NCBI GenBank assembly: GCA_964199315.1
Contig: OZ116699.1
Span: forward strand, 27,404,001-27,468,000
Length of the DNA stretch: 64,000 bases
Direction: 5' to 3'
DNA from: Orbicella franksi
Lineage: Eukaryota
Position numbers and translations under genes: made by a program. The notes under the pieces are model-generated. The model ran no database searches. It worked only from the letters and a program-made list of their open reading frames with translations, and was not told where the DNA came from. Below, in pieces: positions 3,425-64,000 of this stretch; position 1 is the first letter of the stretch; every line of letters begins with the position of its first letter.

Positions 3425-3599
3425 ATTATAGAAGGGAGGGCGCGCCGGAAGTGATGAAAGAAGGAAGAAGGAGCTTCGTTGTTTAAAGAGAGAAAGACAG
3501 AAATTAGATAAGTGCATAGACCAAACCTAGAAATGCGCGGTTCTATGGCTATCCTGTTGCATCCTACAGGATTCGAATGCATTTCCGCTAGTCTAAATA

Positions 3600-4215
3600 G
3601 TTTTAGTAGAATTCTAATTGAATACTAATGCAAATGCTACAGTCTGATTGGCTGAGTGATCGAACACTATCAGCCATAAGTATAATTTCAGAGTTGAACA
3701 AAGAGTATCCAGCAATCTGATTGATTGAGCGATTCCTTATATGACGTTATATCACCGCTCCAGGCGGTGAATAAAACGGTGAATATAACCAATGTTCACC
3801 TCGCCTTCGGCGAATAATTGTTAATTACTGTGCAGTGGCTATGAAATGGCGACGTGTGCTTCGTTTTTCTAAAGTTTTGGAGGAACCTTTTGATGCAAAT
3901 GGAAATTATATGCCTGAGAAGACTAAAAGAAGAACGTTTACGGGCTCTTGACTTAAAAAAAAAAAAACTTGAAATTATTAAAAAAGGATGATGCTCGCAG
4001 ACAAAACTGAAATTTCAATAGAATTGATCTTTCTAAGGCGCGAAATTTAAAATAATACACCTAGAGATAATTGGAAACCCTCATCTATAGTAAATTTCAG
4101 TTAAATTCTACTAAAACAGATCATTCGTTCTCGATTTCAATGAGGTGGTGGTTGATGAGGCCGAAGGCTCATCATCACATAGAATTCTAGAGCTCAGTAT
4201 AGTAATCTAATTGTT
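3600..4215. mobile_element. Bipartite element (TIR-bounded body + terminal hairpin), with a nested fragment of a similar element at ~3770-3825
   Basis: IR gttttagtagaatt (3600) / aattctactaaaac (4104-4117). Imperfect hairpin around tgatgaggccgaaggctcatca ends in taattgtt. ATGCAAAT at 3628-3635 and GATTGGCT at 3646-3653. Confidence 0.6.
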
Positions 4216-6060
4216 AAATAACATACTGCAGTGGTTATTTTCAAATACTTTTGCTTTTGCAGATTTTATCTCGCTACCATAATCGCGCACGCATTTTTTT
4301 TATCCCAGTAGTTTATTTTCCTGGATTAAAGTTGCCTCATTTTCTTGTCAATTGGCTGTATCACCCAGTTGCCATCGTTACGTCATCTAACCCAAATAGC
4401 ATGAATGAAAACGGAAAATCTCTTGTCAAAAAAGAGAGACAACAAAACACTGATAAATGAAGGGTCCGGGCAAAGGACGGTGACGTCAAATGGTAGCCAA
4501 TGATATCCAAAACCATTTATTAGGTATTTTACCCTGAGACATTAGATCTTTCAAGTAATGCAGGATTAGTCTTAACTGAACATCACAACCCTCAAAAGAC
4601 GAAATTAACAATTGATAAACGCCTGCGTGTGGACGTGCGGAAAATGTCACTTTTTCTCGTGAAAAGACCCCGCACGTAGACAATTGTTATACTACATTTA
4701 TTCAATTAATGATGCCGGGATTAAATTTTTAAATTCTAAGAAATATGCAGAAAACGTATGTCTTCTTTATCAACCCTTCCTTTCACAGCAAGCGTACCAG
4801 GGTGAAGGTAATTCTTGAAACTTCCATATTAACATGCAAATTTGAATCGTTTTCGATGCGTGACATCTCCTCCTCCCGCACTGATTACCATTCTTCTTCT
4901 GTTTGAACATCTTTCAAACGATACAGATTGTCAATCTTTTCAGTCACTCTTACATTTCGGGGTGAATACTGACTTTGAGCGGTCAGAAAGCTACACGAGT
5001 ACATATGTAGAATAATTGTGGGTGGACGTAGCTTCCACTCTGATTAACTTTATCACGCTACATTACGGTACATGTTATCAACATATTGACTCAATTGGGA
5101 CCAGTCGACTGTATCAATCGCTAATCTGTCCATTGAAATTAACGAGTTGATGTGAATTACAAGCGAATGCAATGAAGGTTGGTGGAATTTAACTCTGTTT
5201 CCACATTAGTATTGTCATTCTCACTGTATCCTGCCGGAGTAGTTCAGAGGATGCTACATTGCAATCATGCAGTCTATTGATGGACTACTGACACATGTAC
5301 ATGTTGGTGTCACACATTTTCGACTGGCAAAGCATTTCTGGTGGTTTCTAAATCCCTTCAATTCTTTCAAAGATCCACTTGTGCCTTTGGAACTGCTCAA
5401 GGCTAATCAGTTCCATATCAACATCACTCGTTGTGAATGACGTAAAACTCATTGTTGTCATACATGTCTGTGTTATTTTAAAGATATTCGAGATGAAATG
5501 TTCGATGAACAAGCAGCAAATGGGTTTTATTTTTGTTGGCACATGCCTTTTTATAATATTATTGCTCAATCCCAGATGGTTAGCGGTAATTTCTACTTAT
5601 GGTCGCCTAGTTTCAAATTTAACCTCAGCCATGTGTGACTTGCGTGACTGTCTTTATGCAAACTGTTACCATAGTTACAGCAGGCGGAATCGTTTACTTT
5701 TTGTTTTGATGACCATAAACTTAAATTTCACAATTGAAAGTGAACTTAAACCTGAATTATGTCATTCAGTCATTTTCCTTTTCTACGATCGATTTAGCCG
5801 TACGATGATATCACTATTAAGCTCAGGGATAATGCAAGAAAAATTTAACAACGAGAAAAAAAATATTTTAGCTTATTTATCATTTACCTAACTTTGGAAT
5901 TTGGAGGACTTTTAGGCACAACGTCTCTGTGCCATGAAAACGGGCCTTCACAGAAAAGCGATATCAGATGTTTTGGTAATGGAAGTATAAAACTGTGGAA
6001 TTGTAGTAGTTGTGAAACAGACACACTGGCTTATCAGAGAGCCCTAAGCGGTAAAACTAC

Positions 6061-6413
6061 TAATCGTATCTATAACAAAATCCTCATCATGATTGGTTCT
6101 CTGCGCGCCTATTTGTCACGTAATCGGCGCGCGATCACGCGGGTGTCCAATTTGAACTTTTTGTTATTGGATACCTGTAATTGGATACCCATGTGATTCG
6201 CACGTCAATTACGCGCGCTTTAATGGCTTCCTTTGTAATGTTTCGTTCAGTTTTCAAAACTTAGGAAAAGCGCTGCATGCGTTTTCGCTCAAAAGAAGCT
6301 CTCATAAGACATTTTTAACTCCGAAATTTGTTATAGATTCGATTAATTACTGATTGGACCTCGTGTCGTACAATTCAGGTACAATTCGTTTTCATAATTT
6401 CAAATTACTCGCG

Positions 6414-6456
<43 letters not shown>
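6061..6456. mobile_element. Bipartite element (TIR-bounded body + terminal hairpin)
   Basis: IR taatcgtatctataacaaaat / aaatttgttatagattcgatta (ends 6345), then hairpin tgattggacc..gtacaattcagg...cctgaattgtac..ggtccaattac. Confidence 0.65.
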
Positions 6457-6462
<6 letters not shown>

Positions 6463-6669
6463 ACCGGCAGTGGCAGTTTGTGTTACCAATTGCTGTAAAA
6501 CATAAGCCTACCTTGGTAAATAAAGTAAAAAAGCAAAAGCACAAACAAACAAACAAACAAAAACACGCCCACACCAAAAACAGGGTCACGAGTTGTGCTG
6601 ACCTACATGTAGCATATGATAACGGAGTCCAAGGCTTCCAAGTAATTTTACCATGATTCTCTCTTGAAG

Positions 6670-9600
6670 GCTAATTTAAAACAGCAACGTAAGACAGCAC
6701 GAGTGTTCTTTAGTTCGCCATTTGGTGGACTGGAAGAGGAGAGAGAAGAATTAACGAAGAAATACTGGCCTCAGTTGGCTTCTATGTGTAAAAGAGCCGG
6801 ATACGAGTTTGTGCCTGTTGACATGAGATGGGGAATAACATCCGAGATGTCGTCTAATGCTGCTACAATCGAGATTTGCCTACGAGAAATGGATCGATCT
6901 GATATGATAGTGGGTTTCTTTGGACAGGTAAGATGGGCAAAATCGTATCGTTTATATAAGAGAAGAGATTGTAAAATATACTATTAAGAGTTAGTTTGTT
7001 ACTGTTGTTATCCACTGATAAAACACCGAATTAACAATGCACGGCTTGTACAGCCAGAAATACAAGAAGAAAGGTAGCCTGACGATTACAATTGACTAAA
7101 AACAATTGACCCCTGTTTTGATTGGCTCATTGCGTTGCATGCGGTTGTTGTCATTTTATGAATTGTGGTTACTTTGGCCTTGGATGTACGGCTACAGTAT
7201 TCGTTTTGTTGTTTAGAGATATGGTTGGCATGGATTGGACAACCTTTTACAGAAAAGCTTTGATGTCGCAGCTGTGAAATACCCTTGGGTTAACGACTAT
7301 CGTGAGAAAGCTGTAACTGAGTTAGAGTTCTTACAAGGCCATCTGAGAAACCCTGGAAAGAGAGCAGCTTGCTTCTTCTTTAGAGATAAGGTGAAAATAT
7401 ATCTATATTGGTATACTTCAAATCTGAAATTGTCCTTTCCATGAACTGTCGTTATTTGGTTTCGAGGAGTTGTTGGCGATGTCTTTCCAATCCAGACAAC
7501 CCAAATCAAAATGGACACACGTGCAGGAGTCGTACTAAACCTGATCATTAATATTATAGTCTTACGACGATATGAAATTGAAGTTAGCTGAAGAAGCTGA
7601 AGACGAAAGACAGGCACGGAAGTTCCGGTCATCAACCGATGGCCCTAAGGCTGCCAAGTACTTAGAGGACTTGAAACGAAGAGTCTACGAAACCAAAGAT
7701 AAAGTGAGTAATAAAACAAAGCTTTAATTTTTCTTCATGGTTTAATCAGTGAGAGGGGATAGCCAACCCACAAAGAGAAATAAAAGAAGAAATGGATCGG
7801 TCTGATATGATCAGCCTGATATTCTTCTTGATAAATATAACTGCGCCCATGGTTCCTTTTTCATAGTGTTTAGCTGTCCATATGAACTACAAAAATCCAC
7901 AAAAAGGGGCCCGATTAATGTACGAGGCAATAGAGAAGTATCTGCAAGAAGTAACGTTAGCTCGCCCTGTTCAGAAGTTGTCAGCTTTGGAGGAGGAGCG
8001 TGCCCACCATGATGCGTTTAGAGTCAGTAGGCTTGCCATGGGTGGCGTTTTTGTGGGCGGGGATGACTACTTAAGTCGACTTGACAACCACGTCAAGTCT
8101 CAAAGCACAGAGGAAAGTCCTAAACATCTGGTTGTAACTGGGGATGCTGGTAAGATAATGTAATGAATTTTTGCTTTTTTCGATTTACGTAACATTTTTC
8201 ATTGTCTTTGTAATGCTTGAACATCCGTACACAAGGGCCTCTAAGTTCCATCCGTGAAATGGCACAAAAGTTGAACAATCCACATATTACCTTTCAGGGT
8301 CTGGAAAATCATGTTTGCTAGGAAGCTGGTCCTTGCATCACCAAGAGAAATTTCCCAACGACGCTGTGGTGTATCACTTTGCGGGTAGTTCTAGTGATAG
8401 TACTGGTAAGCAATTCAGTTTTTTTTGTCGCCATTGACAAATTATTAAAGCCTGTTCATCTGCTAAACCAACAATAACTTCACCAATAACAACAACAAAA
8501 AAACATTCTGCATGAACTTCCTGATAATTCCAGACGAACATTTCATATTACTGTAATTAACAATTATTCCACCAGCCCACGCTGGATATGACATGGTAGA
8601 TAGTCAATGATGCTATAACCATCTCATATCCAGCAAGCGTGAGTGGAATAATTGTTTTATTAAAAACGCCCCAATGATATAGAAAACTAGCATAAAATAA
8701 AATAAGAACGCCTGAGAAATTACGCATACGCTAACCATATTCGTAGAGCATGGTATAATTCTTCATATATCAGGATGGCTAAGCCAATGAAAACTCGTAA
8801 TTTGCATCATCCAATGGTCTAGTTTTTAACATGATAGCTGTATTAGGATAAACGAACTGTTATTTTCATTCAATTCATTCTCGCATTCAACGCTTATGTC
8901 ATTATTTTTTGATGTCTATTTAACCAACGAATCGAAAATTGATCAACAATTGATCTCTTCTTAGTGCCGAGGAAGATATTAAAGCGTCTTCTGGAGGAAC
9001 TAAACGGTTGGTTCAAACAGAAGACACAGACTAACCAACAGGAACTCGGGGGGCAACCACAGTCAACAGAACCGGGTAATATTAATGAAGACGTTCTTGG
9101 TCTCATTCGAAACCTGTCAGAAATGGTGCAGAGGATCACCCGAGCCGGCTTTCGCAGTGTAATTATTATTGATGCTCTGAACAAAGTAGACGACACTGGA
9201 AAAACAGCGAAGGTAATATATATATTTATAAAAAAAAAAATGTTTGTGCGGTCTCCCATTCAAGGAATACAGAAACTACCAATACCGATGACATGGTGAT
9301 TTGCAAGCATGAAAAATATCTCAATTCCTATCGATTTTCTACAACCTAACAAGACAGAATGGCCGATAAGCACAATGATAATCCTAGTTAATACTAGAGT
9401 TATAATATCGTTTTGTTTTCTTCATCGTAGACCTTATATTGGTTGCCAAAGGTACTGCCTCCAAAAGCCCACCTTCTAGTGTCTGTAATTTCTACAGACG
9501 GTCCAAAGGTGACTGAATTGACTGAAGAGAGAGGCTACTCTGTTATTAACATGATGCCATTGAAGGAGAAGGAAAGAGAAGATATTGCATTGGTAAGATA

Positions 9601-12600
9601 ACCAATGCGTAATTGAAACCTCCTTCTTGTGTTCCTGTTGTTCACAGTCAAGTTAAACACGATCTCAATGCAACGAGCTTATTTAAGTACAGTGCAGACT
9701 ACTTTAAGCCCTTTTGTTTCCATTAATGATCAATCGTTGAAGAAGGAAAGAGAAGATTTTGCGTCGGTGAGATAACCAATGCGTAATCGAAACCTCTTTC
9801 TTATGTTCCTGCTGTTCATTATCAAGTTAAACACGACCTCAATGCAACAAGCTTATTCAAGTACAGACTACTTTAAGCCCTATTCCCATTAATGATCAAT
9901 CGTTAAATTCCTTTCAATTAAAGACATTGTCAAAAAAAATAAAAAGAAGAACGGTCATTAACGAGAGAATCTGGATTTAGTATATCACCGCCTGGCCTCT
10001 CGTTACTTACATTAAAATAAGCTGATAGAAATAAGTATAGAGACTGTAGAAAGGTTAAGTAGATAAACCTGAAATGGAAGAAAAAAATTATGTATTCCCT
10101 ATCTCGGTTCTTGTTTCAAACAGGCAACGCTGAAAGTCCGTGGAAAAGCCTTATCAACAGAGCAAAAAGCGAAAGTTGTGGGCAAGACGCAAACGGGAAA
10201 TCCTCTCTATCTTAAAATATTACTGGAGGTAAGTGCTTTGTTCGCAACGTCATCTATATTTTTGGTTGTTAGAACGTAGTCAGTAATTAGGTCATTTGAC
10301 TGTTGATACCTACGATGTACGGAAACGAATGAATATGTGCTTGTGACGTATGGAGAGGATTGAATACAAATGATGATAGAAACGAACGAATTATTAAAAG
10401 GGTGGATGACGAACCATTGCCAATACCACGGTTCTCCTCAGGAACATAATTATGTCATTTCTCCCCAACAAAACTGGTACATTTAAACCGGTTAATTAAA
10501 AGAGACTTACGTATACAAGTACACATATTAGTTATTTCTCACTGACGTATTTGGTATAATTTTCCTTTTGTTCAGGAATTATGCAGCTTTGGAGAGTTCT
10601 TTCAACTTGATGCCTATCTTGATGGACTTCTTGAGACGAACGAGTATACGATGTCATTGTTTATGCCATCCATGTTACATTTTTTGCACTTGCTGTTACA
10701 TTTTTTCATACTCTTTCCTAATACACTATACGCTTTTTCTCTAAGTCTGTTTTCTTTTGTTGTAGCACTAAAGAGCTTTTTCTTAAATTTCTTCAACGTT
10801 TGGAAGCGGATTATATCCCTAGAGAATTTGAAGGAAATTTGATTAAAGATGTGAGTACAACTGAGTTTCCCGTCCGTTAAATACGAATGACTAAGAACTC
10901 TGCCTGAATGTATAAACATAAACAGTAAATTCGATCTAAAAAGTTGATTGTTATTATTATTTTCAGGTCATGTGTTGCATTTTGGTGGCTCGACAAGGAA
11001 TGTCTGAGAAAGAACTGAAGTCGATTCTTCATATAACCGACCAAATGTGGTCTGTTCTCTACTTCGCAGTAGAAGAGTTCATTTTGGAGCGGACTGGGCT
11101 TTACGGGTAAAGATTAGTTTATAAGGAGTGTTTTGGCCTTATTAGTTGTACTGACAATTTCCAAGTTTTTTTCCTCTTTGTTAACTGTGAAGAATGACAG
11201 GAACTCGAAATTGGCCTATTTCATGTGAACATGGAGAAGCCTACATAGAAAAAAAAAATTAGTTCATCATATTGACATCTTGCTTTCAGGTTTTCACATG
11301 ACGAATTATCTGCCGCGGTAAAAGAACAATACTGCCAGGACGAGGCAACTATCAGGCATTATATCATGTTAGAGGTGGAATATTTTGAAGCGTGATTGAA
11401 GGTTAGAATTAGCATGTTTGCTTATGACGGGTCAAACGAGATCAAAACAAAACTTTTTTTAAATAACTAAATCAGTAGATAAAGTGTTTTTCAAATAACG
11501 TGTAGATTAACTAGTGGAGTTAGCCGACGAGTAATTAGCAAACTTTTGAAATAATATCGACTATTATTGTTATTAAAAGTTTCTTTGAAATGGTAGCTGT
11601 TAAAATAACAGATCAGACATTGTTTCTTTGCAACTACTTCTGAGTTTTTGGCGATGAACATTGTGGGTTGTATTTTGCGCTGCTTTTGCTCAATTCATGA
11701 CTGACTGTCAACCCAAATAAGAACCCTGTCATAGCCTTGCCAGCTATTGCCTGTTATTTTCGTCTTTCATAAAAGGAGAGAGATTTGGTTTACGACACTA
11801 ACATTCCAAAGCGCGTCTGCATGGAACTGCCGTGGCTTCTGGCAAAATCTGGAGACATAGATCGACTTGTTAAGTGTCTCACGACTGCTTCAATCTTCTG
11901 GTCACTCTACAGGTTTGCATAATCTTTTACATATAAGTTTGTTGTGCAAGGTACATTGCATCCTTAATTATGTTCATCCCATCCCACAAAGATCACTTTA
12001 GGATCAGTAACTTTAAAGAAGTATGCACAATATTACGAAAATATATTTTCACGAACATTATTTAAGACGTTTCCACTGAGTTGACAATATATATTACAAA
12101 TAAGGACACAGTGCAGACATTTCATATTTCTGATCAAATGAAAATGCGCTTCACAGTTTTTGTTTTATTTAATAAGTCTTACATTTGCTGTTCTTCAATT
12201 TCAGTGATGAGAACAAGTATGACTTAGTAAACTACTGGAACGCAACTGGGTTAACAGGGGAAGAAATAACTGCTTTGTATCAAAAGACAGTTGATGATCA
12301 GCTGACAATACTCTATATCAGAGAACGAGAGAAAGGAGGAGAAACTATCAATGCTGTCAAAAAGGTAAACTGGACAGTTTGTGAGTCATACATTTCCTGT
12401 TCTGTTCCATCCGTTGTTTAAATAACCGTCCTTTTTCCTTTTGTGGTGAAATGTTTCTAATATAACTTTGTACTTGAATGATCGAGAAGAATAGGCAGCT
12501 GGGTTAGTTTCAGTGAGAGAAGCTCAAGGCTGGACAATGCTTTTTCCTAGTGTTACGATTATCAGTTTTATTTATAGTTTCAAGAGCTTTAACTTTGATT

Positions 12601-15600
12601 TCTTATATCTCTGGATGAGATTGGACAAATGGGCAAACAAATGATTGTATTGCCTCTTATCAGAGACAGCAAGAAAGAAGAGTCAGCCTATGTCTAGTTC
12701 ATATTATAATTAAGAGAGCTCTAATCTCTATCATGATGTTGGAATTCATTCGTTGCAGTTGGAATGGTTATGCTGTGGGGATTTCTTATCTTGGGTTCCC
12801 GGTGGCAGGAAATTGAATGCTCGAGAAGAATGGCAAGCTGGGTTAACTTCAGCGTGAAAAGGCTGAACAACGTTTTTTCCCGGTCTTACGATTATCAGTT
12901 TTATTTATAGTATCAATTTTGTAATTGATAATCAAGCTCTTAAAAAAGCTTAATTTGAGAAATGGCGGTTTTCTCATGATTCTTTCTACTCGTGTATTAC
13001 CGCAAGCACGATGATACTAAGTCTCCTATTTGGAGGCTTTGACTTTATTTACCTCTATAGAATGTAATGTATATGAAAAAATCTCAAGTGAAAATGACGA
13101 TGTCTATGCTAACTCTAAATTTGCAGCTAGCCCGCTTAGTCTTCCAGATGTCCCAGTTCCAAAGTGTTGCAGGACATATGACAGCAGTTGAACCACTACT
13201 CAAGAGAGCTTTAGACTTAGAGGTAGGTGATTCATTTCTTGTTGGTATATAATTAAGAACAGGGCCATTGTGAGGCCATGCCGTGAATTGTAAATTTTTT
13301 GTTCATTTTCCTGGTCAACAAGCAGAACAGGTGTCTTCTTCACCTGGAAAATCTTTGTCTGTTATGAAAATAATTGCGAGTTTCGTAAAACACAAAATCA
13401 TATAAACGGCACAGTTGATTTAATTAAGGCTATGCTCATTGAGTGCCAATAAATTGAAAGTTTCATAAAAAAACACCATTGAAAGCTTACTTTAACTCCG
13501 AGGTTTCCCTTTAATGTTTTATCATATGGTTGTTATGTTTTATGATTGTTGTAATTTTAATGATATCAACTGAGCTAGATATATAAGTTTGATATTCATA
13601 GCTCTGACATTATCTTATGTAATAGTAACGAAAGTAAAGCTATTTCTACGTGTGTTTTTGAGGAGGTTTTCATGAACTCAAGTGCGAATGGTGGATATTG
13701 AAGTGTGTCCTTCAATGTATTTTTGGTAGAAGTCAGTATATTCAGAAGAACAAATCCGCAGTGATTCAGATGTAGCTGAGCACTACACGGAGGTGGCCAA
13801 TGCGCTTGCGTGCCTTTATGTGGATACTGAACGCTTCGATGATGCCGAACCACTGCATAGGGAGGTTCTTGAGCTGGATGAAAAGTAAGACAGAACTTTA
13901 AAGTAACTATACTTGATCACTGGTGTTTTATCATGGACTATTTCTTCTTCAAACTATTTGACATGATGAAATTGTTTGTACCATTAAGGGTCACAAAACC
14001 AGTTGGACCCTTATGTTTTATTGCACAGATTAACAGGAAACTTGTTATTTGTTATGAATAAAATACTATATTTCTCTGACGGCTGAATCAGGTTCGCAGA
14101 TCAGAGAGAGCGAGGTTGGTCCAAAGTAGCGACTACATTAAACGGTCTTGGTGTGTTATATTACAAGACAAACAAATTTGACGAGGTAAAGCTAGTCATT
14201 CTTCGTTAATTGTTCAGGTTACATATTTTATGTTTGATAGTAATAATGATAATAAATTTGCGCGCAAATGGTTCTCAAATGTGAGACCCACTGCAACTAT
14301 ATTAAAAGGAACTGAGCCGTAAAGTTTTTGCAAGCTTCTTGTTTTAACACTTCTGTGTTACTTTTACCACAACATGCATGTTAAGCCCACTATCAACTCA
14401 TTCACTAATTCCACCAACTTAATTCTAATTCTAAACTAATTCCACGTGACTTACTTTTTGTGTGCTATTAGCAAGCAGCAATTTTAAGATTTAACTTCAG
14501 CTTCAGTAAACGCCCGCATATAAGAACAACCAGGCTGAAAGTTTGCCAATAAAGCATCATATACATAGGAACCAACTCAGCCTGATAAATAAAACATGCT
14601 CTTATATAAAAAGAAAGTAAATGCCAGAATAAGAAAGCAATTGTATTAAAGTGCTTAATTGTTAATGTTTACTTATATTATAGTAATAGCATTTATTGAA
14701 TTTTTTTTATTTGGAATGCATTTTTTAGTGTAAGTATAAAAAAATTGGAAGTTAGTTAAACCTCTAGTAATTTATAATGTATAGTATATCTGAACAAATT
14801 TTAAGGACATTTTAAGAGCATTTTCAGGCTGATTTCTCACTGACCACCCGGTAAATAAGACCCTGATCAGCCTGAACCCCTTATATGCGAGTGTTTACTG
14901 TGCTTTCTTGGGATTATTTTACACCGACAAAGCCGAATCTGGGGACACATGAGCCGTCTCAAGGTATGCTGGGGTACCAGCGCTCTAGTTTAATTTGATG
15001 CCTTTGTTTTAGGCTTTGGAATATTACAACCGATGTCTTGAGCTTCATCGTCGAACCTTGCCACCCACTCACCATTTAATTCCAGACACACTTAACAACA
15101 TTGGTGCTTTGTATAAGTCCATGCTACGCTGGGAGGATTGTGCTAGAGTTCTCGAGGAAGCTCTACAGGTGATGACTATAGAAAAAAGCCGTTACGAAAA
15201 TTGCAAATGCAAGTTATGAAGTAAAATTGGGCACAACATCAACTTCACATCCATAAGCTTATGGAGACAGCATTGATCATGATCAATGACCATGGTGGTC
15301 ATATACACAACTTAAGAAGCTGTGAAATTAAAACCTGAAAAAAACATTCAGGCTTGAACGGGATTTGAGGCCATGACCTCTGCGATACCGGTGCAGTGCT
15401 GCACGAACTATCAAGCCAACTGGGAGCTGGTCGCGTTATGAGTTCTTAATATACCCATAGACGGTATAATACGAACGGGTATATAACGAACTCACAACGT
15501 GACCAGCTCCCACTTGGCTTGATAGCACAGTTGGTAGAGCACTGCACCGGTATCGCAGAGCCTGATTTTTTTCAGGCTTTAATTTCACAGCTGCTTAAGT

Positions 15601-16467: not shown

Positions 16468-18524
16468 AGGAATTCAGTCATGGAGCCAATTCACGTTATT
16501 AAAGTAACTGCAACTTGTAAGAAGAAAATTCACCTGATTTGTCTAAGTGGGGCAGATTGACAGTCTTGAAAAAATCTTCATGTGGGAAAAAATACTTTCC
16601 GGGACATTCCCTCTGTTGACTGAATACACGTTCGTTGAACCCGTCTGCCGAACTTACGCAGGGCTAGTTTGTCAGGATGGGCTTATTACAATTTGAAGTA
16701 CCTATAATAATTTCTTGCAGAGCCCTGGACATTCGTACAAAAGCATATGGCCCGGACCATCATGATGTTGGTCAGACATTGCTAAGCTATTCTGCATTCT
16801 TGCTCCCTGTGGACGCAAAAAAATCAGCGGACGCCGCAAAACGAGCAGTTGAAATTATGGAGGTACAAATAGCTATTAGATGTGTGTTCAAGTAGCATGC
16901 AGACCTGTTCTGAGGGTCGGGAGGTGGGTTTAGAGTCATAATATTCTAGTTGCCAATAATGTCACCAGTTGCGGTAATCCAAATCATTTAAAGCCTGATC
17001 TCTGGGTAGCAGATCGTTTTATCAAAAACAAATTCAGTCACACCAGTTTTCAGCAGGCTAAAATGGTGCTTATTAGTGTGATTATAGGCTTGCCTTGCAC
17101 AACTGAAACAACAGGTTTTTTTCTCTGGCGACTGTATTTTCGGTTGAACGGACATTTGAACTGCACTGGGTGGGGAACACTATGAAAAACGAGGGAAATC
17201 GTCAACCCTCCTTATGGATGCTTCTATAATAGGGACACCTCTACATCAAGAGCAGTTCTCTCGCTCAAACACCTTTATAATACGTACATCAGGCTCAAAA
17301 ATATGAACACCTTCCTTTGGTACATGTATTTAAGCGGTTTGACTATATTTGTTTGTAGAAATCGTTAGGACCAGAGCACATAAACACACTGAACGCTCAG
17401 GAGAATGCAGCGATAGCCCTCGCCAAGGAGGGAAAGTTTGATGAGGCTCATCCATTCTTCAAGAAATCAGGTTTGATATTTGCTATGTAGCGTTTCTTTG
17501 ACCTCTATGCTGTATGGTTTTAGTACTTCATTCACTGGGCATACTACACGTTAAATAAATCGAATTTCATTTGTTGTAGTTACAGTAATACACCGGTAAG
17601 GCGGTTGTTGTTGGGTTAAAAATTCTTTTGTGGATTCCCAACATCAGGAGCAAATGTAGATTCCTAACCCTATACCAGGCGAACTAATCCTTATTACACC
17701 AGTTAAACCGAGTTTCTAGCTTTCAAGTTCCATATTTTTACCACGCAAAGTGAAGTAACACATGAAAGAAACGTATAAGGCAAAGAAGAATATCGAAGGC
17801 TTAAAATCTACAACGTACTAATTCCTTAAACGGGTCAGACCATGTAATGGGCAAAACTTCAGTGAGATTCGGTGTTCACTTGAAACCCAGCTGACGCAGC
17901 TACTCGAAAAGACACTAGTGTGTTCATCATCATCACCTCCCAAAAATATGGCCTGCTCATCAAATGCCTTTCTCTTGTTTATGTTAGGAGTGATTCGACA
18001 TGAGAAAGGTCAAATGAATTCATCGATTCCAATTTTGAATTCTGTCATGGCTGATTACTACCTCAATAACGGTCACAATGAGGAGGCGAGGCAGTTGTTT
18101 GAGAGACTGGTGAGTGGAACCTGGCATTTGGCAACAGAATAGATATTTACATAATAACTGGCATGCAATCTTTCTTATATTTACAAGTTGATTATTGTTA
18201 TAATGTTGATTATGTTTCCGTATTCATTTTCGTTAAGTGTCTATGTTTCCGCACGGTAGGGAATCCCGACCATTTAGTATTTTTTATTCGGTTTTACACC
18301 AAGAAGGGGAAAAAAGAGGCAAAAAACAACTGGAAAAACAGCTTTACAAAAACTTACAAACTACTTACGAATAAGCAAAAGAAAGTAAATAACATAATCA
18401 AAGAAAACTCGCATTCATTCTCAAACACGCACACACATCGAGGCGACTACTTAACAATTAGACCCGTAGCCCGCAAGGGCTACGGGTCAATAGCCCATGA
18501 GGCGAAGCCTCATGGGCTATTGAC

Positions 18525-53790: not shown

Positions 53791-56700
53791 CTCGAGGAAC
53801 TCTAAAACATTAAAATAATACTTTTTCTAAGACATCAACTGTTCAGATAACCAAGTTCCCCGAAATAAGTCACTTTTTTAACCATCATGACATCTCTCTA
53901 GGCCGTCATGTAAATACCGCGTCAAGCAAAAGCTTAGAAATTTAAGCGTAGTGTATCACAAAACCAAGAACCCATTCGGAGCGAAAATTTGTATGAATAT
54001 TAGTTTTCAGCTGCTCTCATACATCATTTAAGTAAAATCTCAGGAAGATCAATAGTTTTGTACTTCGAATTTTAGTGACGTCATGTGAAAACCAGCTATA
54101 GCCTTCCACGTGGAGCCAGAAATCACTTTGCGCAAAAGAGAAGTCGGTTGAAAAACGTTTTGCATCATATTTAACGTGATTTTAAAACTAATCACGAAAT
54201 TAAACAACAGTTTAACTCACCTGCAACAGGGAGATCATCTTTGTATTCGAAATGAACTGCCCTACTCCAGGATGGGGAACGTGGCTGCTGCGTACATCGT
54301 GATGGTGACCGCAAGCTTTTATCCCTGGGTGAAGATGGAGCACCAGCAGCATTTCGTTTAAGCGCTAAATCTTCTATAAATTTCTAAAAGAAATGAGAAA
54401 GCATGACATTTTGGGTACTTTCTATGATAAAAGCTAGATGTGTGGAGGGTTTTTAAACCTTTTTTCTGGTGGCAGTTTTGAAAGAAGCTCGATTGTCAGT
54501 AGATCCCCTCCCTCCCCCTGAAAATTACTTGGTTTGCTCCACAGCTCTTTTGTGCTTATTTCCTCTCGTACTGAACAGTGATGGAGATAAACGTCTTTTG
54601 CATCTTATGGTAGCAGGGGTGCATGCTTAACGAAGTTTACTTTCATAAATTTTACTGACCTGTGGGGGTCCTTGGGGGGTTATCTTCCGTCTTGGGACTG
54701 CCCCTTTGGACGACGGAGCAGTCTTCTTTTGTTTCGCGATTGGAGGAAGAGTTCTTGGGGTGGAATTGGCTTTTATACCAGGCCAACTTGACTTTCGCGT
54801 TTCTTTCTTAATCTCGGGTTTAAGTGCTGTTACGTTCTCAGGGTTTCTCATTTTGTTACTGGCTACTATCGAGGCAGCTGCCATTTTTGCTTCGGCCACT
54901 GTGTGTACGGTATTCGCGATGGCCTGACCTTGTTGTTCCCCTTGTTTACTGTCGTTCTTTTCTTGGTTATTGTTGTTCGTAGCTTTATTTTTGCCTTTTC
55001 CTTTCTTTTTGTCTTTGTCCTGAATTAAAAAGAGAAATGCCTCATCAGAAAAAAGTATTTGCATATACATGCACATTTACCACACAAAGGTGTACTTCTG
55101 CGGGTTATGCTGTTAGAACATGGGGGAGTTGTTGAATACTGGCCGATATTCAGTCTTGAGTTGTTTGTCGGGTTTTTTTTTTTTTTTTTTCACTTTTCCT
55201 TCTTTATTTTTTGTTTCTTTTTCTCCATTTAGTAGTTAGAAGGTAATATTAATAGCATTCTATTGATTTTATATGTAATAAATGTCAAGTATAAGTAAAA
55301 TGAATATTGTAAGCTACGGTATTGTGAATAGTATCAGTAGTGTAAACTACGATAGTATTTTGAGTGGCGGTAATAGTAGTGTAAGTAACGGTTGTATTGT
55401 AAGTAACGTCAGCAACGGTGTAAGTGATATTAGTATTGTATACGTAAGTAAGGTAAGTGCTGTAGGTAATATTATTGTAAGAAGTGTTAGTAGCGTAAGT
55501 AATTTTAGTATTGTATGTAATTAATTTATGATTAAAAAAAAAAGTTAGAAGGTAATAAAAAATAAATAAGAATTAGCTCAAATTTTAAAGCACGAGTCCA
55601 TGGCAGACAGGTCATGTTGGGAGGTGATATTGGAGCTCAAGTTGAACCCGGTTATGTTTCTGAACATGGACTGTACAACAAGTGCGATTGTCTTTTCGAA
55701 AAACAATCTCGATATTAGAGGCAAATGGAACGAAAGTAGATTCATTCAGTTGTTTGAATTGACATGGAGATGAAAGTTTTAACAATCCCGTTCTTTTATT
55801 AATAAACGTTTTGTGTTATAAAAGATCGTGTGATTCATGGCTTTTGCATTAAATTTTAACCTCAGAATACGGTATTGCATGAAAAAAATGATACTTAAAT
55901 AAGAATTGTGTACCTTGTGAAACACTGACACTACACTGAATGGTAATGTGTAGAAAAAATATCAAACAAACAAAAAATTACCCCCCAATAGTTACCCTAT
56001 TCAGTCTATCGTTAAAGAACCGAAATATCTCAAAATCATTATAACAAGTAGTAAAATCTTTGTAGTTCAGCTAAAGACCAGATTGCTTCAGGTTAAACCT
56101 GTTAACTTTCTTGACGTTTAGCAGTTTTAATTGGCGTGATTTATTTTAGAGAAAATCATCACTTGCTGATGTGAAAGATAAATACTACCTAATGGTATTT
56201 TGGTATGAATAGACTGTCAGCTACATTTTCTAATGTACCTCTTCTTCTTCGATTTCAATGGCTTCATGTTCGTCAAAGGGTGTCACCAGAGTGCTTTTCC
56301 ATTCCCAAGCGGCAAGAATTAGTTTACGCACTTCAGGGTTCAAGACAACATAAAACAAGAAGAATCCAAAACCCTGTCGACATAGCAAATGCAATTAAGT
56401 GTTTGTCCAAAAGCGCGGCAAAGACTTCGTCTTAACCTGTTTTTACCATTTGTCCATCCAATTAATTACATGATTTTATTTCATGCACTGTAAATCAGTG
56501 TTTGCGTATAAATAATCACTGGACACCCCGCAGAAACAAACAAAGAACTTTACTATGTTCTCGTGTGTGCCTTACTAAGTTTAGTTCAGTACTAAACGTC
56601 TGCGCGGTTAGATTTCACTAGCTCATGAACATAACCAACATACGTAGACGCACTAAGTTGCTGTTAAATGTAAGTAGCCCCTCTTTGTTTTTTTTGAGAT

Positions 56701-58560
56701 TTTCCTAGCAAAATCAAAGGAGGCCAACAATCCACATCTTTCTGAGTCATCGTATTTTGCTTATGCTTATTCCTATATGCTAGTGAAAACCAGGCTTACG
56801 ACGGTCTACGCACCTAAAGTGCCTAAAAAAATACAGTGAAAGTAGAATCATCACCTGCAACGCGTTAAATATGGAGAAAAAGGTATGGTAGATATCACGA
56901 TCGATGTTCAAGGAAAGTGATCCCAGAAGCCAGGTTAGAATGACACTGATTGTTATGCAAACCACTGTTTGTAAACCGGACCTATTGAGAGAGTTATTTC
57001 GTTTCAACAATTAGTACAAACCAGGAGGAAAGTAGTAGCTGATTCAGAATTGACTGTAGTATCAGTGATATAAGCAGCGAAATGCTTTAGTTTTGAGGCG
57101 AATGAACGACCTATTCGAATTTATTGTTGTTTGGACGAAGAAAGACGGTATCCTAAGAAAACTACAACGTTCTATTGGAACCAACCAGCGAATTATTTTG
57201 TATTCGGGAAAAAAAGGGTCCGTCTTTGATTGATCTGGTCGAAGTTCATTCATGTAAATTTAAAACACATTAATATAACTAACTGATGCCTTACTTGATG
57301 ACACTTTTCTTGGTTTCATTTTCTTCAATGTCGCTGGACTTACGGTAAGTAATCAAAGCTTTCGCCAACAAAACAATGAGTATTAATTGTACCTGAAAAC
57401 AGAAGAAGCAATATGCTCATGATTTTGGATATTTATTATCCATCAGAGTTAGGTGATAAGGAGACAGCCCTTGGCTCATTTCAGGCTCTCTGAGACATGA
57501 GTGTAGGCAGGCCTGAAGATGTGCACTCCGAGACCTGAGTGAAGGCAGTTTTCCACATCGGTCCCCGAAAAGAAAATCATGCATGAAAAATAGCCATACC
57601 TCGAGAATTTGATGTTTCATTACCACCAGGACGCAGTCGCGTCCCGGGTTGTAATGAGGATTGGATGGTCAGAGAGGCTGGTAGAAGAATCGCAGAAAGA
57701 TCTCTTGAGATGCATAGCGATAGGTAATCTACTCACCATCCCTAACGTAATTATGGGTGTTGCCACTGACCAGCTCAACGCGTCAGAGAAGGAGATCCAG
57801 CAGCTGAAACAAAGGAAAACAAACACATAATTGATGTATTTGTTTAAATGTATCAAAAAGCCATCAACACAACAAAAACAACAATAAATAGAGCAGAAGA
57901 GTCTCCTTGAAAACGAGTTGTATGTCCGAAGAGTGATAATAGTAGTGAGCTGTATTTTAATGAGGAAGATATTTGAACAGTGAAGTGATGAAGTAAACGA
58001 AAAATCATAATCACTAAAAAAAGAAAAATGCAACATTTTGTTTCAAGAAACTCTATCAATTCATCCTTTTGGCCCTCTGCCAGTGTCGGTCCTGTCAGCT
58101 GTGTCTATGTGTCTATGTGTCTGTCTGTCTGTTTCTTTACATTTCAATGAATATAGTATCGCAATATGTTAATATAAACAGGGATTAACTCACTGTGGAT
58201 GTTTATCGTACATCTCGTACTTAGAGGCAAGGACACATACAACAACAAGCGGTAAACCTGAACCAAAACCGCAGCAAAACATTAGTGCATTTTAAATCAC
58301 ATATTGCAATGCAATGTATATTTCACTGCTCAACTACCAACGTCGTATTGTAAAAGACTGTCCATGATAACTTTCCTTACCCCAAGCGCCTGCGTAATAG
58401 AGTTTTGTTTTCAGTTTCTGCTGCTCCTCGCTTTCACGCTTCCTGGTGAAGGAGAAGAGGTAAAGGGCCTGGACTATAAGCCAACAGAGAGTTACAAGAG
58501 ACAAATAGTTCATGGTAATGGCCACAACAGCACAAGCAATCTGAAAAGAAATAAAACATC

Positions 58561-58592
<32 letters not shown>

Positions 58593-61500
58593 CATTTGAA
58601 TGGTTTAACTTATCAACAGTTATTTACAAAATATGTAAATGCAAAAATAATCATTAACGATCATTAGCACACCCTTTCACAGTCATGTGACAAAGTGAGT
58701 AATAGAAACTCACTTTACGTGTACGTGTCACTACAGAGCTAAAATCAGGCGATCTCTCATAGTGATCTTACTTTCTAAAACACTACAACTCGATCGTTTT
58801 TTAAACACTTCATTAGGAGATTTAAAGCTATGCAACTAACAATTATTTAATCAGTGTATCATTTTGCAAGAATTGATAAAAATATCACCAAGATTATTTT
58901 GGTTTCAGTTGCACTATATAACCTGTTTTGAAGGCGTATGTCATCCATTTGGTGCTCATTACGTCAAATATCGTAAAGGTATTCGATGTATTAAACCTAC
59001 TGTGTCATCTCTAGCGTCAGCTCCGGCCAGGAATAAAAGCTGAGATAGTAATACGCAAATCGCTTGACTCATTTGCATATCTCGTTCAAAACGGCTGTCC
59101 CTGCATAGAGAAACGATTACAATATGTTACAACGAATGCTTGTTTTAGACGTTTAACGTGACATTCTGTCAGTCAATGGCTACATTTTGCACTTTGATTT
59201 GCGCTTACTCGACACACTCAGCGAGTCAGTGCTATACGGGCATTTTATAGCTCGACGAGCTGCCCTACACGGTCGTTCTCATATCTTTCTCATCCCGTGG
59301 ATTACCGGAAGGAAAATGTTTTACAACAAGGTAACCCTTCATGAAAGTTTCCCCGGGCCTTCTATCTCAGGGGTCTAGTGCCCGGCAATGTGCGTATTGT
59401 TAGTTAAACCTAGCGGGGATCTTCGAAAAAGTGCAGCAGGGCTTTTTAAATCTCCTGCCTAAATAGCGGAATTAACTCAGGAATGAACTGTCATTGCTGA
59501 ATATTACTGTGTGCATTGCCCCTTACATCTCTATCAAAACTCTGTTGAAACTGACAACCTGTAAGAAACGGTTACTGACCAATCCCCAATGATGACCACT
59601 TCATAAAAGTGTTCCTCGATCACATTCGATTCGATGCGAATTACAAAAATTGGTGTCCATATACTATGGATACTATTACTATTACCAAAAGTGTTAAAAA
59701 CTATGTTCTATCTCGGCAATATCAAACTTAAGTTTCCACAATTCTTCCAGCCCTTTCCTTTAGTAATCCGTCCTTCTACTCCCATGGTTTTTTATGTTCA
59801 CTCAAACGAGATGGAGACTAACTCGATAATCTCGCGGTTCTATTAGCCTCCATGCACAAACTATGTATCATTGTCACCTTTAATTGTTATATATGTATCT
59901 TTTTTTCTTTTTTATGCTAATATTGTAATTTCAAAATGTAAGTGCAAAATAAAGTGAAGTTGAAGTTGAAGTTGAAGTTGAAGTATGGAACACAATGCCT
60001 TCATCCTTATTACATAACAAGGTGTTACGACAGCAATAGTGCGCGAGGAAACGGTTTAGAAAAACATAGATAACAGCTTTTTTCAGTCTAATAAATTTCT
60101 TTTGAGTTTCTCACAATTGAACACAGTTAGCAAACATAGGAAGTACTTATAATAATTTACCTTATTTCTTGCGGATTTTTATCACTTTCCCCCTTTGCCT
60201 TGTTGACTGAATTTCCTCCGTGCTCACTTTCCAGGATAAAGTATGTGAAACAAGGACACATCGCTGCCATTACCTTACGCTTTGTGACTTTCCTTTTCAT
60301 GCGGACTAGAAAACTAACTTTTTCAGTCTTCTCGACGTTATCACTCACTTCACGAGTTTCGGTTTTTTCAATGCCATTTCCTTCTGATTCTTCTTCAGCC
60401 TTTGAAGCCTTCTTAACTATGTTGTTAGATGAAGAGGGCTGCCATTGAAAGCAACAGATTGTCACTTTTTCTGGTTCCCGATGAGAAAAAGAACTGTTTG
60501 AATCTTGCGTTGTGTTCCCGTCATTTTGTTTCACGTTTTCACCTGTGGCTGCTTTGAGATCATTGCTCAAAAAATGGTTTTGGTCTTTGTAAGAATTTAG
60601 TGTTACAGCATCCTTTCTCTTTGGTTTAGTTTTTTGAAATACGTTTTCAGTGTCTCCAAGTCCTGTTAACAGCTTATCATAGTTTCGTTTCATTGTTTCG
60701 GCGCCAATCCTTCTGACCCTATCTTCGCCAATTGGAACCTTTTCTTTTTGAACTCCTTTTGATGTAACAACAGCTACCGATACACTTGTACTCGTAACCT
60801 GACGTTTGAAGCGAGCTCCCTCGACAAGAGAATCAGTCCCTCCAGAAACCGTTGTTTCTGTTGCCAGTGTTTTTTCTATAATTGTGTCTTCTCTCTGTAA
60901 ATCATAAATCATCGAAGTCACCAGACTACCGTGACGCGAGAGTTTCCTTTGTCGACCTTCACTGGAACATGGGGAATTTCCTCGTGAGAATTCTTCTCCG
61001 TGCGTCGCGCGGCCGTTTCCTTTCTCTATATCATTTCCTTTTCGACATTTCTTCATTCCTGTCATAACATCAGTCTTCTCTTCGGTAACATGAACTGAAC
61101 GCGTTTTTTCTTTCTTCAGATCACCGCTCTCTAGTAAAAGGGTGAGACTGGAGCGATTCTGACTGCTCTGTTTTTCATCATCGTCTCCTTCAAAAGCCTC
61201 GTTAACTACAGAGTTATTGTTCTTTTCTTTGCCTTTCCCTTTTTTCTTCTTAATCTTCGTGGAGCCTTTGAGTTGAAATTCGTTTGCGCATCTGCATTAA
61301 AAAGATGGATTGATCAATGACATTATACTGTCTACACTTACCGCCAACATTTACTCCACGCGCAACTATGATTCAAAATGAAAACTGTACTGTTGATTTA
61401 GGATCAGAATTAAACTCTGGATTACTATTCTGGAAAACTGTAGATACTTGACCATTGTTAACTCATCGGGGTAGCTATCAATTTCTAAATAAAGATAGAC

Positions 61501-63722
61501 AGAAAACTAGTACGTAGATCGTCTTGTTCAAGAGATAATTTGACTGGAATTACGGAAAAAGTAAACAGACATTTTGTTTGTACTAGCTCACAATGAAAGT
61601 TGTTGAAAAACTTTAAAAACTGACTTTGAGTATTTTATGATATCGTTAGATACTTGAATAAATAAAGAAAAAATTGGCAAAGTCGAGATTTTAGATTTGG
61701 AACTCCATACTTACGATAGCGTAACAGCAGCTGCTACGGCTGCTGTGGTTCCGACGGTCGCGACTGCTACTCCGACGAACACTTTCTTAGGAATCGGAAA
61801 GGTGGTGTCATTACTCTCTGAGACTCCATCCGTGTTGTTCTTACTCTGATCAATAGAAAATAGAAGCAATCTATTAAATGATGTATTTAACATGCGCCAA
61901 TCACTCAATCATTTTATTGCATGTCGAACAAAGCAGGTTGCTGGCGAAAGAAATAATCATTACTGAGTTTTCGGTATAGACATGCGAGGAATTGAGAATG
62001 CCAAAGAATTGTAGAGACTGAAGTAAGCTGCAGGTGTTGTCTGCTTTATAAGATCTTTCCGCAAGAAGCAATTCTGGGTGTTGGTAAGATGAAAAAAGAA
62101 GGAATTCACAAATGATATGTGAAATGGAAAGCAACCTACCGTTATTCTGATGAGGTCCTTGAACAGTGTCAAACTGAACGTATTTGTCTCATTAACTCCC
62201 TCGACTGAGACATAAAACCATCTGCTAGAGCAAGCTTTCACGTAAATGATCAATCCTTCTGCAGCGAATTCCTCGTCAGATACAAAGCGGGGCTCGGTGC
62301 TGCCTCCCTTGGAAGTAGCATTACAAAATGTACTGTTTTGAAGGTCATCCAGTTGCCAAAGGGGATCGCTATCAGCAAGCTTAATATCTCCATGGAACTC
62401 ACAGGATCCAAGGTTGACGTGATAATTTCGGGGATTCCTGATGCTTGTAGAAACTGAGATACCAGCACTTCCATGGGATGTTTGCAGGAATACGGTCTTT
62501 ATCCCCGTCTTGTTCAACAAGTCGTATTTATAATATTTTACAGAATTTTGTACCACACTGGACACTACCTCTTCTTCTTCCTCGAGCAGAGCAGGTTCTA
62601 AGAAACAATGCGTAAGGAAAAATAGTGTAGTAATTAATTGTAAAAGAAGAAATGACTGCGTTTTTAGAAATGACTTTAAGCAATGTGTGTTTACTCACGA
62701 GGGAAAATGATGTCATCTGCCGATTGAGCAAATGTATGGCGATATGCCACGTGGACGTATGTTGTACTTGACCGGTTTAGTCATGCATGGGAACCCAAAA
62801 ATTTGGAAATTTTTCGGTTTAAACTTAGAAATTGCTTACAATTGTGGAAATGCGTTTTTGCCACTGGAAAGCAGAGCTGATTCTTGATTCCTTCAGTATC
62901 GTCGAACAGCAATTGATCGGCAAACCGAGATTGTTGCTTACGGATTAGGCTGGAATTTGATATGGGGCTTGCTTTTTGACATCACTGACCTACTATCCCA
63001 CTTTAAAATGTAGGGAAATAGTTTTTCCTGAAACTGAAATTCAAAAGATGACAAAACTTACACCTTTGAGTTGAAGCTAGAGATGAAAGGACAGAAGAGA
63101 AAGCCGGATCACAGCGAAAATAGCACGGCAAAGCACTCACCATAACACGAGCTTTCTTGAATGTTTCCTACCAGGGAATTTACGCCTGCAAAGGTTTTGG
63201 AAGAAACTACATGATGATCATCAGGATCACTGGCAATGATATTCAACTCATTCTTGTTTAGTCTCTGACCAATCCCTATAACAAAAATGTTTACCCCGTC
63301 TCCACGGAGCAACTCGGATGGTGTGATTACCGAGCCCGTCCCCAAGCTAGCTCTTCCGTCAGTAAGAAGAACAAGCACTCTCGGAATACCCAATTCTTTA
63401 GCTCTGACTCCGTGATCTGGGTTTCCAAACAGGCTTGCATGGGCTTCTAAGAGAGCTAAGTCGGTGCGGGTCAAACCAGGTTCGTAAGGTACCGATCCAG
63501 TTGCACTAAGGACGTCTTGCTTGTTGGCGTAGGTGTTAAAACGAAACATTGTCGTCGGAACGTCGCTGTATCTGATGAGAGCCACTCGAGTGCCATCAGG
63601 ATATGAAATGTTGAAATATTTGCAAACCTTTATGATGAACTGGAGTCCAAGTTGAAAGTTGGATGGATTGACGCTGGTAGAGGAATCCAATACGAAGGCT
63701 AAATCGATCGGATTTTGACAAT
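51043..63722 (-). CDS. VWA-domain adhesion/secretin-family-like 7TM receptor with very large ICL1 insert; 5' exon(s) outside the window
   Basis: Phase-consistent exons: 63722-63141 (VWA; DSSTS..T..LTDG MIDAS), 62597-62140, 61845-61715 (TM1), 61291-60161 (377 codons, low complexity), 59100-59001 (TM2 SQAICVLLSQLLFLAG), 58540-58381 (TM3 IACAVVAITMNYLSLVTLCWLIVQALYL), 58257-58194 (TM4 WGLPLVVV), 57803-57737 (ECL2 CWIS, TM5), 57392-57295, 56981-56855 (TM6 LTWLLG; TM7 FFSIFNALQ), 56373-56239 (GFGFFLFYVVLNPEVR), 55019-54660, probably 54383-54221, last exon 51213-51043. The junction between 54221 and 51213 is unresolved (needs a phase 1-to-0 exon). Confidence 0.83.
53491..54100. mobile_element. Non-autonomous TIR element in an intron of the 7TM gene
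   Basis: Left attgctggttttcagtgtcac; right end reverse-complements to tatagctggttttcacatgacgtcac. Internal hairpin atgctggtgcccatccgtatgggcaccaacat. Confidence 0.6.
55234..55557 (+). mobile_element. TSD-flanked, A-tailed insertion (retroposition signature) made of degenerate GTAAGT-like repeats
   Basis: AGTTAGAAGGTAATA at 55234-55248 and 55543-55557; A-run at 55534-55543 immediately before the second copy. Confidence 0.7.
58561..58590. repeat. (AAT)n microsatellite
   Basis: Directly visible; adjacent to the TM3 exon acceptor. Confidence 0.95.
59956..59984. repeat. (GAAGTT)n hexamer repeat
   Basis: About five tandem copies. Confidence 0.9.
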
Positions 63723-64000
63723 CTAAGGAAGATAATTGAGATAAATTAACTATTACCCTATTCATACATATTTTTGCGTGTGTTTTACGCGAATGGACAA
63801 AAATTGTTAAGGCGCGCACAAAATTAATGTTGTGGCTGACTTATTCCACTATTAATGAAACAACTTTTCGTCTAAGAATCAATCAATGAGAAATCTAGAG
63901 GAAGACAGAGCTACGATATCTTCGAAAAGGACATTAATATGACCTTATAATTAATATCTCGAGCGCGGTCTCTGCCAATGCTTTTTTTTAATAGGATGTC

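Follow-up and report, generated by a model that had tools for sequence, protein, structure and literature searches.

The GAIN domain is the signature of adhesion G protein-coupled receptors (GPCRs), and current models of their activation need it, either for the exposure of a tethered agonist (Stachel) or for coupling between GAIN and the seven-transmembrane (7TM) bundle. A survey from 2025 found the GAIN/7TM module in the majority, though not all, of the holozoan adhesion GPCRs (PMC12716839). Among the 33 murine adhesion GPCRs, ADGRA1 (GPR123) is the only one that lacks GAIN, and it has no ectodomain (PMC13178472). In the sponge Amphimedon, 12 of 40 Adhesion receptors were without the GPS, some had short N-termini, and the authors suspected incomplete gene models (PMC4302439). 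These exceptions, ADGRA1 and the short-N-terminus sponge receptors, say little on how a large ectodomain would talk to the helices without GAIN, since it is absent from them. Here, we describe a gene of the coral Orbicella franksi that appears to encode an adhesion-type receptor with a large ectodomain and no GAIN. It lies on the minus strand of a stretch of 64,000 nucleotides, hereafter the window (contig OZ116699.1, G000:C2:27404001-27468000, plus strand), and its 5' part is beyond the window end. We added the next 20 kb past the window (L002, L003) and use extended coordinates that continue its numbering, 64001 being L002:1.

We read the locus as one conserved coral gene for a GAIN-less class B adhesion-type receptor, which would carry, in this order, a signal peptide, a lysozyme-like domain, a module with seven cysteines, a VWA domain with a metal ion-dependent adhesion site (MIDAS), a beta-sandwich, a stalk, and the first transmembrane helix (TM1). 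The probability that we give to this reading is about 0.72. The original prediction, made from the letters of the window, had proposed a GAIN-less VWA-7TM receptor, and the present results support it: the gene has no GPS, the domain before TM1 is PPC-like, the upstream exons are free of GPS, and the exon of the third helix is of the 7tm_2 family. The predicted ectodomain, from the translation of the joined exons, has 673 residues in four domains, with 19 cysteines and 10 N-x-S/T sequons. The exons of the predicted full-length protein were scored one by one, and they were compared with five orthologous loci from ENA assemblies (L006, L007, L008, L009, and L011).

The region preceding the first transmembrane helix

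All six frames of the genome were searched with the GPS profile (PF01825). This resulted in 145 matches, none of which falls in the span of the gene even at E 10. The nearest are at C2:27481767-27481904, in the next gene upstream, and at C2:27391597. A scan of extended positions 55500-69000 in six frames with the regular expressions C.C.HL[TS].F and HL[TS].F[AGS].L found neither a GPS nor a Stachel pattern on the coding strand. As a positive control for both searches, the neighbouring adhesion receptor gene scored 3.6e-11 (52.7 bits) for PF01825 and was found to carry the motif CKCDHLTNFAVLM (C-K-C-D-H-L-T-N-F-A-V-L-M). That neither GPS nor Stachel precedes TM1, as originally proposed, agrees with profile and pattern searches that are both negative here and positive in the neighbour. 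The translation of the stalk and the pattern scan revealed neither an H-L-T/S cleavage site nor a T-x-F-A-V-L-M tethered agonist, and the listed open reading frames of the orthologous loci hold no GPS-like sequence. The exons upstream of position 64000, to which the window did not extend, were recovered and encode a signal peptide, the lysozyme-like domain, and the Cys-rich module, with no GPS. None of them can hold a GAIN.

A GPS or GAIN might nevertheless be present and have been missed, if the introns hide a small unannotated exon or give rise to an alternative isoform. Exon B, the exon between the VWA and the stalk, is flanked by introns of 294 and 543 bases, and RNA coverage is thin for rare isoforms. 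We consider this very improbable, since a GAIN needs about 300 residues, for which the introns around exon B and the frame are too small, and the same compact series of exons is found in five loci. Moreover, the pattern scan was negative in all frames, and the profile that remains silent in the span detects its sites elsewhere in the genome, including those of both neighbouring adhesion receptor genes.

Exon B encodes a domain of 152 residues, in line with the single domain of ~150 residues that had been described after the VWA. The genome has one copy of it, and a search of 1.84 billion representative proteins gave nine matches, eight of them real relatives, all exon-sized open reading frames from cnidarian-like assemblies; the ninth (P0004) was rejected as a low-complexity artefact. 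No Pfam family matched exon B, and PF04151 (PPC) gave no hit at E up to 1. An AlphaFold2 model based on the alignment of the eight relatives is all-beta (mean pLDDT 79.5, pTM 0.77) and forms a closed, complete jelly roll over residues 1-147, the only poorly defined loop being residues 59-76. The best Foldseek match of this model is 3jqw (probability 1.00), and its matches by shape in Swiss-Prot/AFDB are the PPC domains of Vibrio proteases, C6orf120/UPF0669, and NDNF. A search with a protein language model independently pointed to PPC and UPF0669. Several sponge and rotifer proteins named 'VWFA domain-containing' have an exon B-type fold after their VWA, and no GAIN-containing chain is present in any of the structure-match lists shown for exon B. 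As modelled, exon B is a PPC/collagen-binding-domain-like beta-sandwich standing at the GAIN position, and not the divergent GAIN fold that the original prediction had envisaged as an alternative. Compared with PPC (PF04151) and the collagen-binding domains of clostridial collagenases (1nqd, 3jqw, 5sv5), its sequence identity is only 7-14% and the poorly defined loop is an 18-residue low-confidence insert. With respect to this superfamily, the jelly-roll fold is present and a sequence-profile match is absent.

There are ~5 + 21 residues between the end of the sandwich and TM1, which is far too few for a GAIN subdomain to stand there. The stalk had been described as N-glycosylated and followed by TM1; it has ~21 residues with two predicted N-x-S/T sequons and leads into a 23-residue helix. 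Directly before TM1, we found the motif [ST]-F-[AP]-I-[PR]-[KR]-[KE]-V-[FY]-V in the window (61783-61800) and at L006:11222-11344, L008:12459-12581, and L011:1081-1203. It is absent from L007. In two orthologous loci it takes the faintly Stachel-like forms F-T-F-A-I and Y-S-F-A-I, which recall T-x-F-A-V-L-M. One may ask if this is a vestigial, uncleaved tethered agonist, and if exon B and the stalk are a diverged and shrunken GAIN subdomain B, given that GAIN-B and the exon B domain are both beta-sandwiches. However, the model of exon B is a complete jelly roll by itself, and the domain has only three cysteines whereas a GPS has two disulfides. The motif is ~7 residues from TM1 instead of ~20, has basic residues rather than Leu-Met at positions 6-7, and is missing from one of the loci. 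We consider a shrunken GAIN very improbable.

The VWA and lysozyme-like domains

The exon preceding exon B (exon A) matches Pfam PF00092 (VWA) with an E-value of 3.4e-39 over positions 1-172 of the 174 of the profile. In a search of the PDB, its solved relatives include collagen VI alpha-3 (4e-96), the mussel thread protein PTMP1 (4.5e-34), and integrin alpha-M (5.9e-12). All five MIDAS residues (D-x-S-x-S, Thr, and Asp) are matched residue for residue in the alignment with the alpha-M I domain, where their counterparts are D140, S142, S144, T209, and D242. They are invariant in the five orthologous loci. The VWA was originally described as MIDAS-intact, and it does carry a complete MIDAS in these alignments, with a predicted metal site.

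Further upstream, the lysozyme-like domain is split over three exons (U4, U3, and U2), each of which was scored separately. A three-species profile of U3 matched GH19-type endolysins of the PDB with E-values of 3.5e-9 (9hnv), 1e-6 (PWe2 endolysin), and 1.3e-6. U2 matches chain 7r6s, which U3 also matches, colinearly but weakly. Against the PHROG endolysin families, U3 scored 1.3e-4 in this species and 6.8e-9 in an orthologue. Pfam gave nothing above threshold on the upstream exons, and the search of NCBIfam gave no match. Together, U4 to U2 are predicted to form a lysozyme-like domain of the GH19/phage-endolysin type. With the phage endolysins of GH19 and the class I chitinase family (PF00182; 9hnv, 9ms7, 7r6s) it shares A-A-F-x-A-Q, the H-E-T/S position, the E-E pair, and the G-R-G-F/P block. 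In contrast with them, it is distributed among three exons of an animal receptor gene, and its first catalytic Glu varies.

A Gln stands in the place of this first Glu, the general acid of the H-E-T/S motif, in Orbicella franksi, a His in L006, and a Thr in L008, and L007 retains the Glu. The second Glu pair does not vary across species, and conservation extends to the remainder of the core motif. The two catalytic glutamates of GH19 are therefore not both present here, the first one being replaced. The variability of the general acid suggests that catalysis was lost in several lineages while the fold was kept. Where the catalytic acid is replaced the domain is probably inactive, and in most species it has the look of a binding module, not of an enzyme. 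Between the lysozyme-like domain and the VWA, exon U1 encodes the 7-Cys module, which folds at pLDDT 72 and has no recognisable fold in the PDB (best E 4.5).

A search by shape in the ESM Atlas returned in its first row a cnidarian cluster of 'putative Matrilin-2' proteins of ~490 residues, with VWA and Pesticin (PF16754) domains. Its members have the same beta-sandwich shape (TM score 0.59), and no 7TM is listed for them. We tried PF16754 as an identity for the lysozyme-like domain and rejected it, since it had no exon-level match in the genome. The cluster may correspond to truncated models of the receptor or to a free-standing secreted ectodomain cassette.

Helix bundle, gene model, and orthologous loci

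The exon of TM3 matches Pfam 7tm_2 (PF00002) with an E-value of 2.5e-7 and 30.7 bits, for a cut-off of 20.6. Its best solved relatives are chains of ADGRD1 (1.2e-3), followed by the glucagon receptor. We identified 18 paralogous exons in the genome, with 27-39% identity, and all 18 have a PF01825 match 1.1-3 kb upstream on the same strand. Hence, every detectable relative is a canonical GPS-bearing adhesion receptor, and the present gene stands apart from them. For the TM6/7 exon, a search of the genome at E 1e-3 returned the exon itself and no paralogue, and this points to a helix bundle that is old and very divergent. All seven hydrophobic blocks are conserved with the L006 orthologue. Judged from its sequence, the bundle is of the adhesion type (class B, 7tm_2). 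Among the hallmarks of class B2 adhesion GPCRs, the gene has the 7tm_2 helices and the long multi-domain N-terminus; GAIN/GPS, cleavage site, and tethered agonist are lacking.

The divergence of the bundle leaves some room for another reading, in which the protein is not a signalling GPCR and is instead an adhesion or scaffold membrane protein with a degenerate 7TM, its function residing in the ectodomain and the giant first loop. The identity of TM3 to its paralogues does not exceed 39%, TM6/7 has none, and a first intracellular loop of 377 residues is unheard of in working GPCRs. Yet the seven helices and the class B landmarks (the C-W of TM3 and that of the second extracellular loop, ECL2) are conserved with L006, and the TM2, TM3, TM6, and TM7 blocks are also found in the more distant L008. 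Conservation in both loci argues for selection on the helix bundle, and we regard a non-signalling scaffold as unlikely.

The features of the gene are given in Table 1. Every exon junction is GT-AG, and a single open frame, with an ATG at the head of a clean signal peptide, extends through exon D. The continuity of splice phases that the original prediction had seen within the window is thus found in the whole frame, with phases that match in the orthologous loci. The whole exon series is present in L006 and L008, and parts of it are found in the same order on the shorter contigs of L007, L009, and L011. Where the contig reaches, this order is lysozyme-like exons, Cys module, VWA, exon B, stalk and TM1, long loop, and TM2-7. 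Splice phases are the same in each locus wherever the exon is present, and the stalk exon has 34-43 codons and unchanged phases in the 5 loci where it was found. Relative to the Orbicella franksi copy, the identity of exon B is ~60% for L006 and 31-39% for the four remaining loci.

Table 1. Positions of the exons, domains, and motifs of the receptor gene, in window numbering or, where stated, in extended or locus coordinates
Feature	Position	Strand	Basis or remark
U6, start codon and signal peptide	extended 68594-68549	minus	M-A-A-R-A-I-L-F-I-A-L-F-L-L-Q-G; in-frame stop upstream
U4, lysozyme-like part	extended 66760-66453	minus	
U3, lysozyme-like part (core motif)	extended 65856-65667	minus	
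U2, lysozyme-like part	extended 65427-65207	minus	
GH19-like core exon	L002:1668-1856 (-); L006:5960-6160; L007:1390-1581; L008:6611-6805		
U1, 7-Cys module	extended 64257-64107	minus	
Exon A, VWA domain, predicted residues 306-499	63141..63722	minus	Pfam; N-/C-terminal Cys pair conserved
MIDAS D-x-S-x-S (D-S-S-T-S)	63673..63687	minus	alignment to alpha-M I domain
MIDAS Thr	63469..63471	minus	alignment to alpha-M I domain
MIDAS Asp, within L-T-D-G motif	63358..63360	minus	alignment to alpha-M I domain
Exon B, modelled PPC/collagen-binding-domain-like beta-sandwich at GAIN position, residues 500-652	62140..62597	minus	
Exon C, stalk and TM1	61715-61845	minus	translation
Extracellular stalk, ~21 residues, two N-x-S/T sequons	61783..61845	minus	translation, regular-expression scan
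TM1, 23-residue hydrophobic run	61715..61782	minus	translation; conserved in L006, L007, L008, L011
Exon D, hydrophilic first cytoplasmic loop, 377 codons	60161..61291	minus	frame continuous with exon C; orthologous exons in L006, L008, L011
TM2 block	58998..59108	minus	conserved with L006
TM3 block, class B C-W-x-x-V-Q/E motif	58376..58549	minus	Pfam 7tm_2; conserved with L006
TM4 block	58193..58258	minus	conserved with L006
ECL2 (C-W) and start of TM5	57731..57820	minus	conserved with L006
End of TM5 and third cytoplasmic loop	57294..57392	minus	conserved with L006
TM6 and start of TM7	56840..56986	minus	conserved with L006
TM7 and conserved acidic C-terminal motif	56236..56388	minus	conserved with L006, L008

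The RNA runs containing the sequence are labelled coral metagenomes. Only two splice joints were recovered from them, and most contigs are unspliced. A contig of run X2 joins 63722 to 64107, with GT..AG on the minus strand, which is the junction between U1 and exon A. In the same run, the loose end of a contig maps exactly to the 3' end of U6 and connects it with the beginning of U4. In X23, a deep run of raw reads, only 2 reads fall on the gene region.

The locus could consist of two genes that we merged, a secreted or single-pass 'matrilin-like' protein with the lysozyme-like, VWA, and sandwich domains, and a separate class B receptor with a short N-terminus. The ESM Atlas does rank first the 'putative Matrilin-2' proteins, which combine a VWA with a lysozyme-type family and have no listed 7TM. 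Furthermore, no RNA contig has the splice between exons B and C or between exons C and D, and the contigs across the B-C intron are unspliced. Against two genes, exon C lacks both a start codon and a signal peptide and opens in phase 0, which fits the phase-0 donor of exon B exactly, in all five loci; it closes in phase 2, fitting the next exon. Without TM1, the six helices downstream would not add up to seven. The loci agree in order, strand, and spacing. The sequence obtained by reading through the donor of exon B is not conserved. We find it unlikely that two genes were merged.

Some further results weigh against a single GAIN-less receptor, together with those just mentioned in favour of its alternatives. 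For the junctions B-C and C-D, the support comes from canonical sites, phase, and conservation instead of RNA reads, and no full-length transcript or protein model was found among the data searched. Pfam fails to recognise exon B as PPC, and its GH19 family (PF00182) stays below threshold on the lysozyme-like domain, with 0.14 in this species and 0.003 in the best orthologue. Finally, the 7TM class is assigned mainly from the TM3 exon, and any G-protein coupling is putative.

Some observations concern the surroundings and the transcripts of the gene. The next gene upstream, on the same strand and outside the window (~extended 73850-80000, C2 ~27.477-27.484 Mb), is a canonical adhesion GPCR with its own 7TM exons and a GPS of textbook form at L003:3659-3955 (extended 77659-77955). 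On the other side, the GPS match at C2:27391597 is 12 kb below the window start. One X2 contig reveals an alternative non-coding 5' exon at L002:2849-~3060 (extended 66849 upward), which is spliced to U4 across an 88-base intron and lacks an in-frame ATG. In the intron between U2 and U1, the stretch L004:2801-3200 (extended 64401-64800; L002:401-800) has a contig depth of ~2,100 to 12,800 in three RNA runs, with many loose ends of contigs beginning at ~L004:3011-3016. It looks like an abundant expressed repeat, of the short interspersed element type or similar. Contigs of the poly-A run X3 span intron and exon alike over L004:4191-5600 (extended 65791-67200) at a depth of 11-41, which exceeds that of the VWA exon (~4) and could result from retained introns, an antisense transcript, or a repeat. 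In L008, a coding-looking repeat of ~1.7 kb (L008:10593-12300), with (E-G-R-K)n in several frames, lies in the intron that separates exon B from the stalk exon. The acidic motif T-P-F-D-E-H-E-[AG]-[IL]-E-I-E-E after TM7 (window 56236-56290, L006:19150-19200, L008 ~17950-18000) is strongly conserved in the 3 of 3 loci that extend to it, and may serve as a signal for docking or sorting.

Proposed signalling and comparison with known systems

The GAIN-less receptor that we propose should be unable to autoproteolyse or to use an exposed tethered agonist, because GPS, cleavage motif, and Stachel are absent from its predicted sequence. The different mechanism of activation put forward in the original prediction would follow from these absences. 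Its ectodomain would probably act as a ligand sensor, in which the MIDAS metal of the VWA would bind an acidic residue of the ligand, and the lysozyme-like domain would recognise a glycan, for instance peptidoglycan or chitin. In integrin I domains, ligation of the MIDAS shifts the C-terminal helix. In the coral receptor, the C-terminal helix of the VWA runs straight into the first strand of the exon B sandwich (E-P-A-L-L, conserved). With so short a stalk, the sandwich, compact and held within ~25 residues of TM1, would have to rest right against the extracellular side of the helix bundle. Either a shift of the VWA helix upon ligand binding or clustering could then be relayed to the 7TM with no need for cleavage. 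We infer both the ligands and this direct coupling of ectodomain to helices, which would resemble the ectodomain-to-7TM coupling of some adhesion GPCRs and of secretin-type class B receptors.

The set of domains, a lysozyme-like one without the catalytic acid, a VWA with MIDAS, and a collagen-binding-like fold, points to the sensing of matrix or of microbial glycans by a reef-building coral. One may go further and suggest a coral pattern-recognition GPCR in which GAIN was swapped for a PPC-like sandwich and in which the GH19 domain devoid of catalytic acid and the MIDAS VWA sense bacterial peptidoglycan or chitin and signal directly to the helices. This specific scenario is rather doubtful. 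If true, it would mean a new activation logic in class B and a new class of microbe sensors for coral-microbe and coral-symbiont biology.

In a limited literature search, we found no description of an adhesion-type receptor with a large ectodomain in which a different fold stands in for GAIN, nor of any that has a GH19-like domain. Within the same limits, no paper combined GH19, cnidaria, and lysozyme.

As for described proteins, the VWA with intact MIDAS is shared with integrin alpha I domains, the VWA of collagen VI and matrilin, and the anthrax-toxin receptors. ANTXR1/2 have a VWA, then a membrane-proximal beta-sandwich, which is Ig-like, and then a TM helix. Relative to this general description, the TM helix of the coral receptor is the first of seven, and its sandwich is PPC-like, not Ig-like. 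With canonical adhesion GPCRs, such as ADGRD1 and the upstream neighbour, the coral receptor shares the adhesion-type 7tm_2 bundle and the long multi-domain N-terminus. It differs from them by the lack of GAIN, GPS, H-L-T site, and Stachel, by the PPC-like sandwich with its 21-residue stalk, and by the giant first cytoplasmic loop. Like the GPS-less receptors of Amphimedon, it has a 7tm_2 domain without GPS in an early-branching animal; in contrast to them, its N-terminus is long and was recovered up to the signal peptide, and its exon series is conserved across species. With ADGRA1 it has in common the adhesion-type 7TM and the absence of GAIN and tethered agonist, but ADGRA1 has almost no extracellular region whereas the coral receptor retains a four-domain ectodomain. 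The coral receptor is therefore a natural test case for GAIN-independent signalling: adhesion-type receptors without GAIN were already known in principle, and what would be new is one that combines the lack of GAIN with a large ectodomain.

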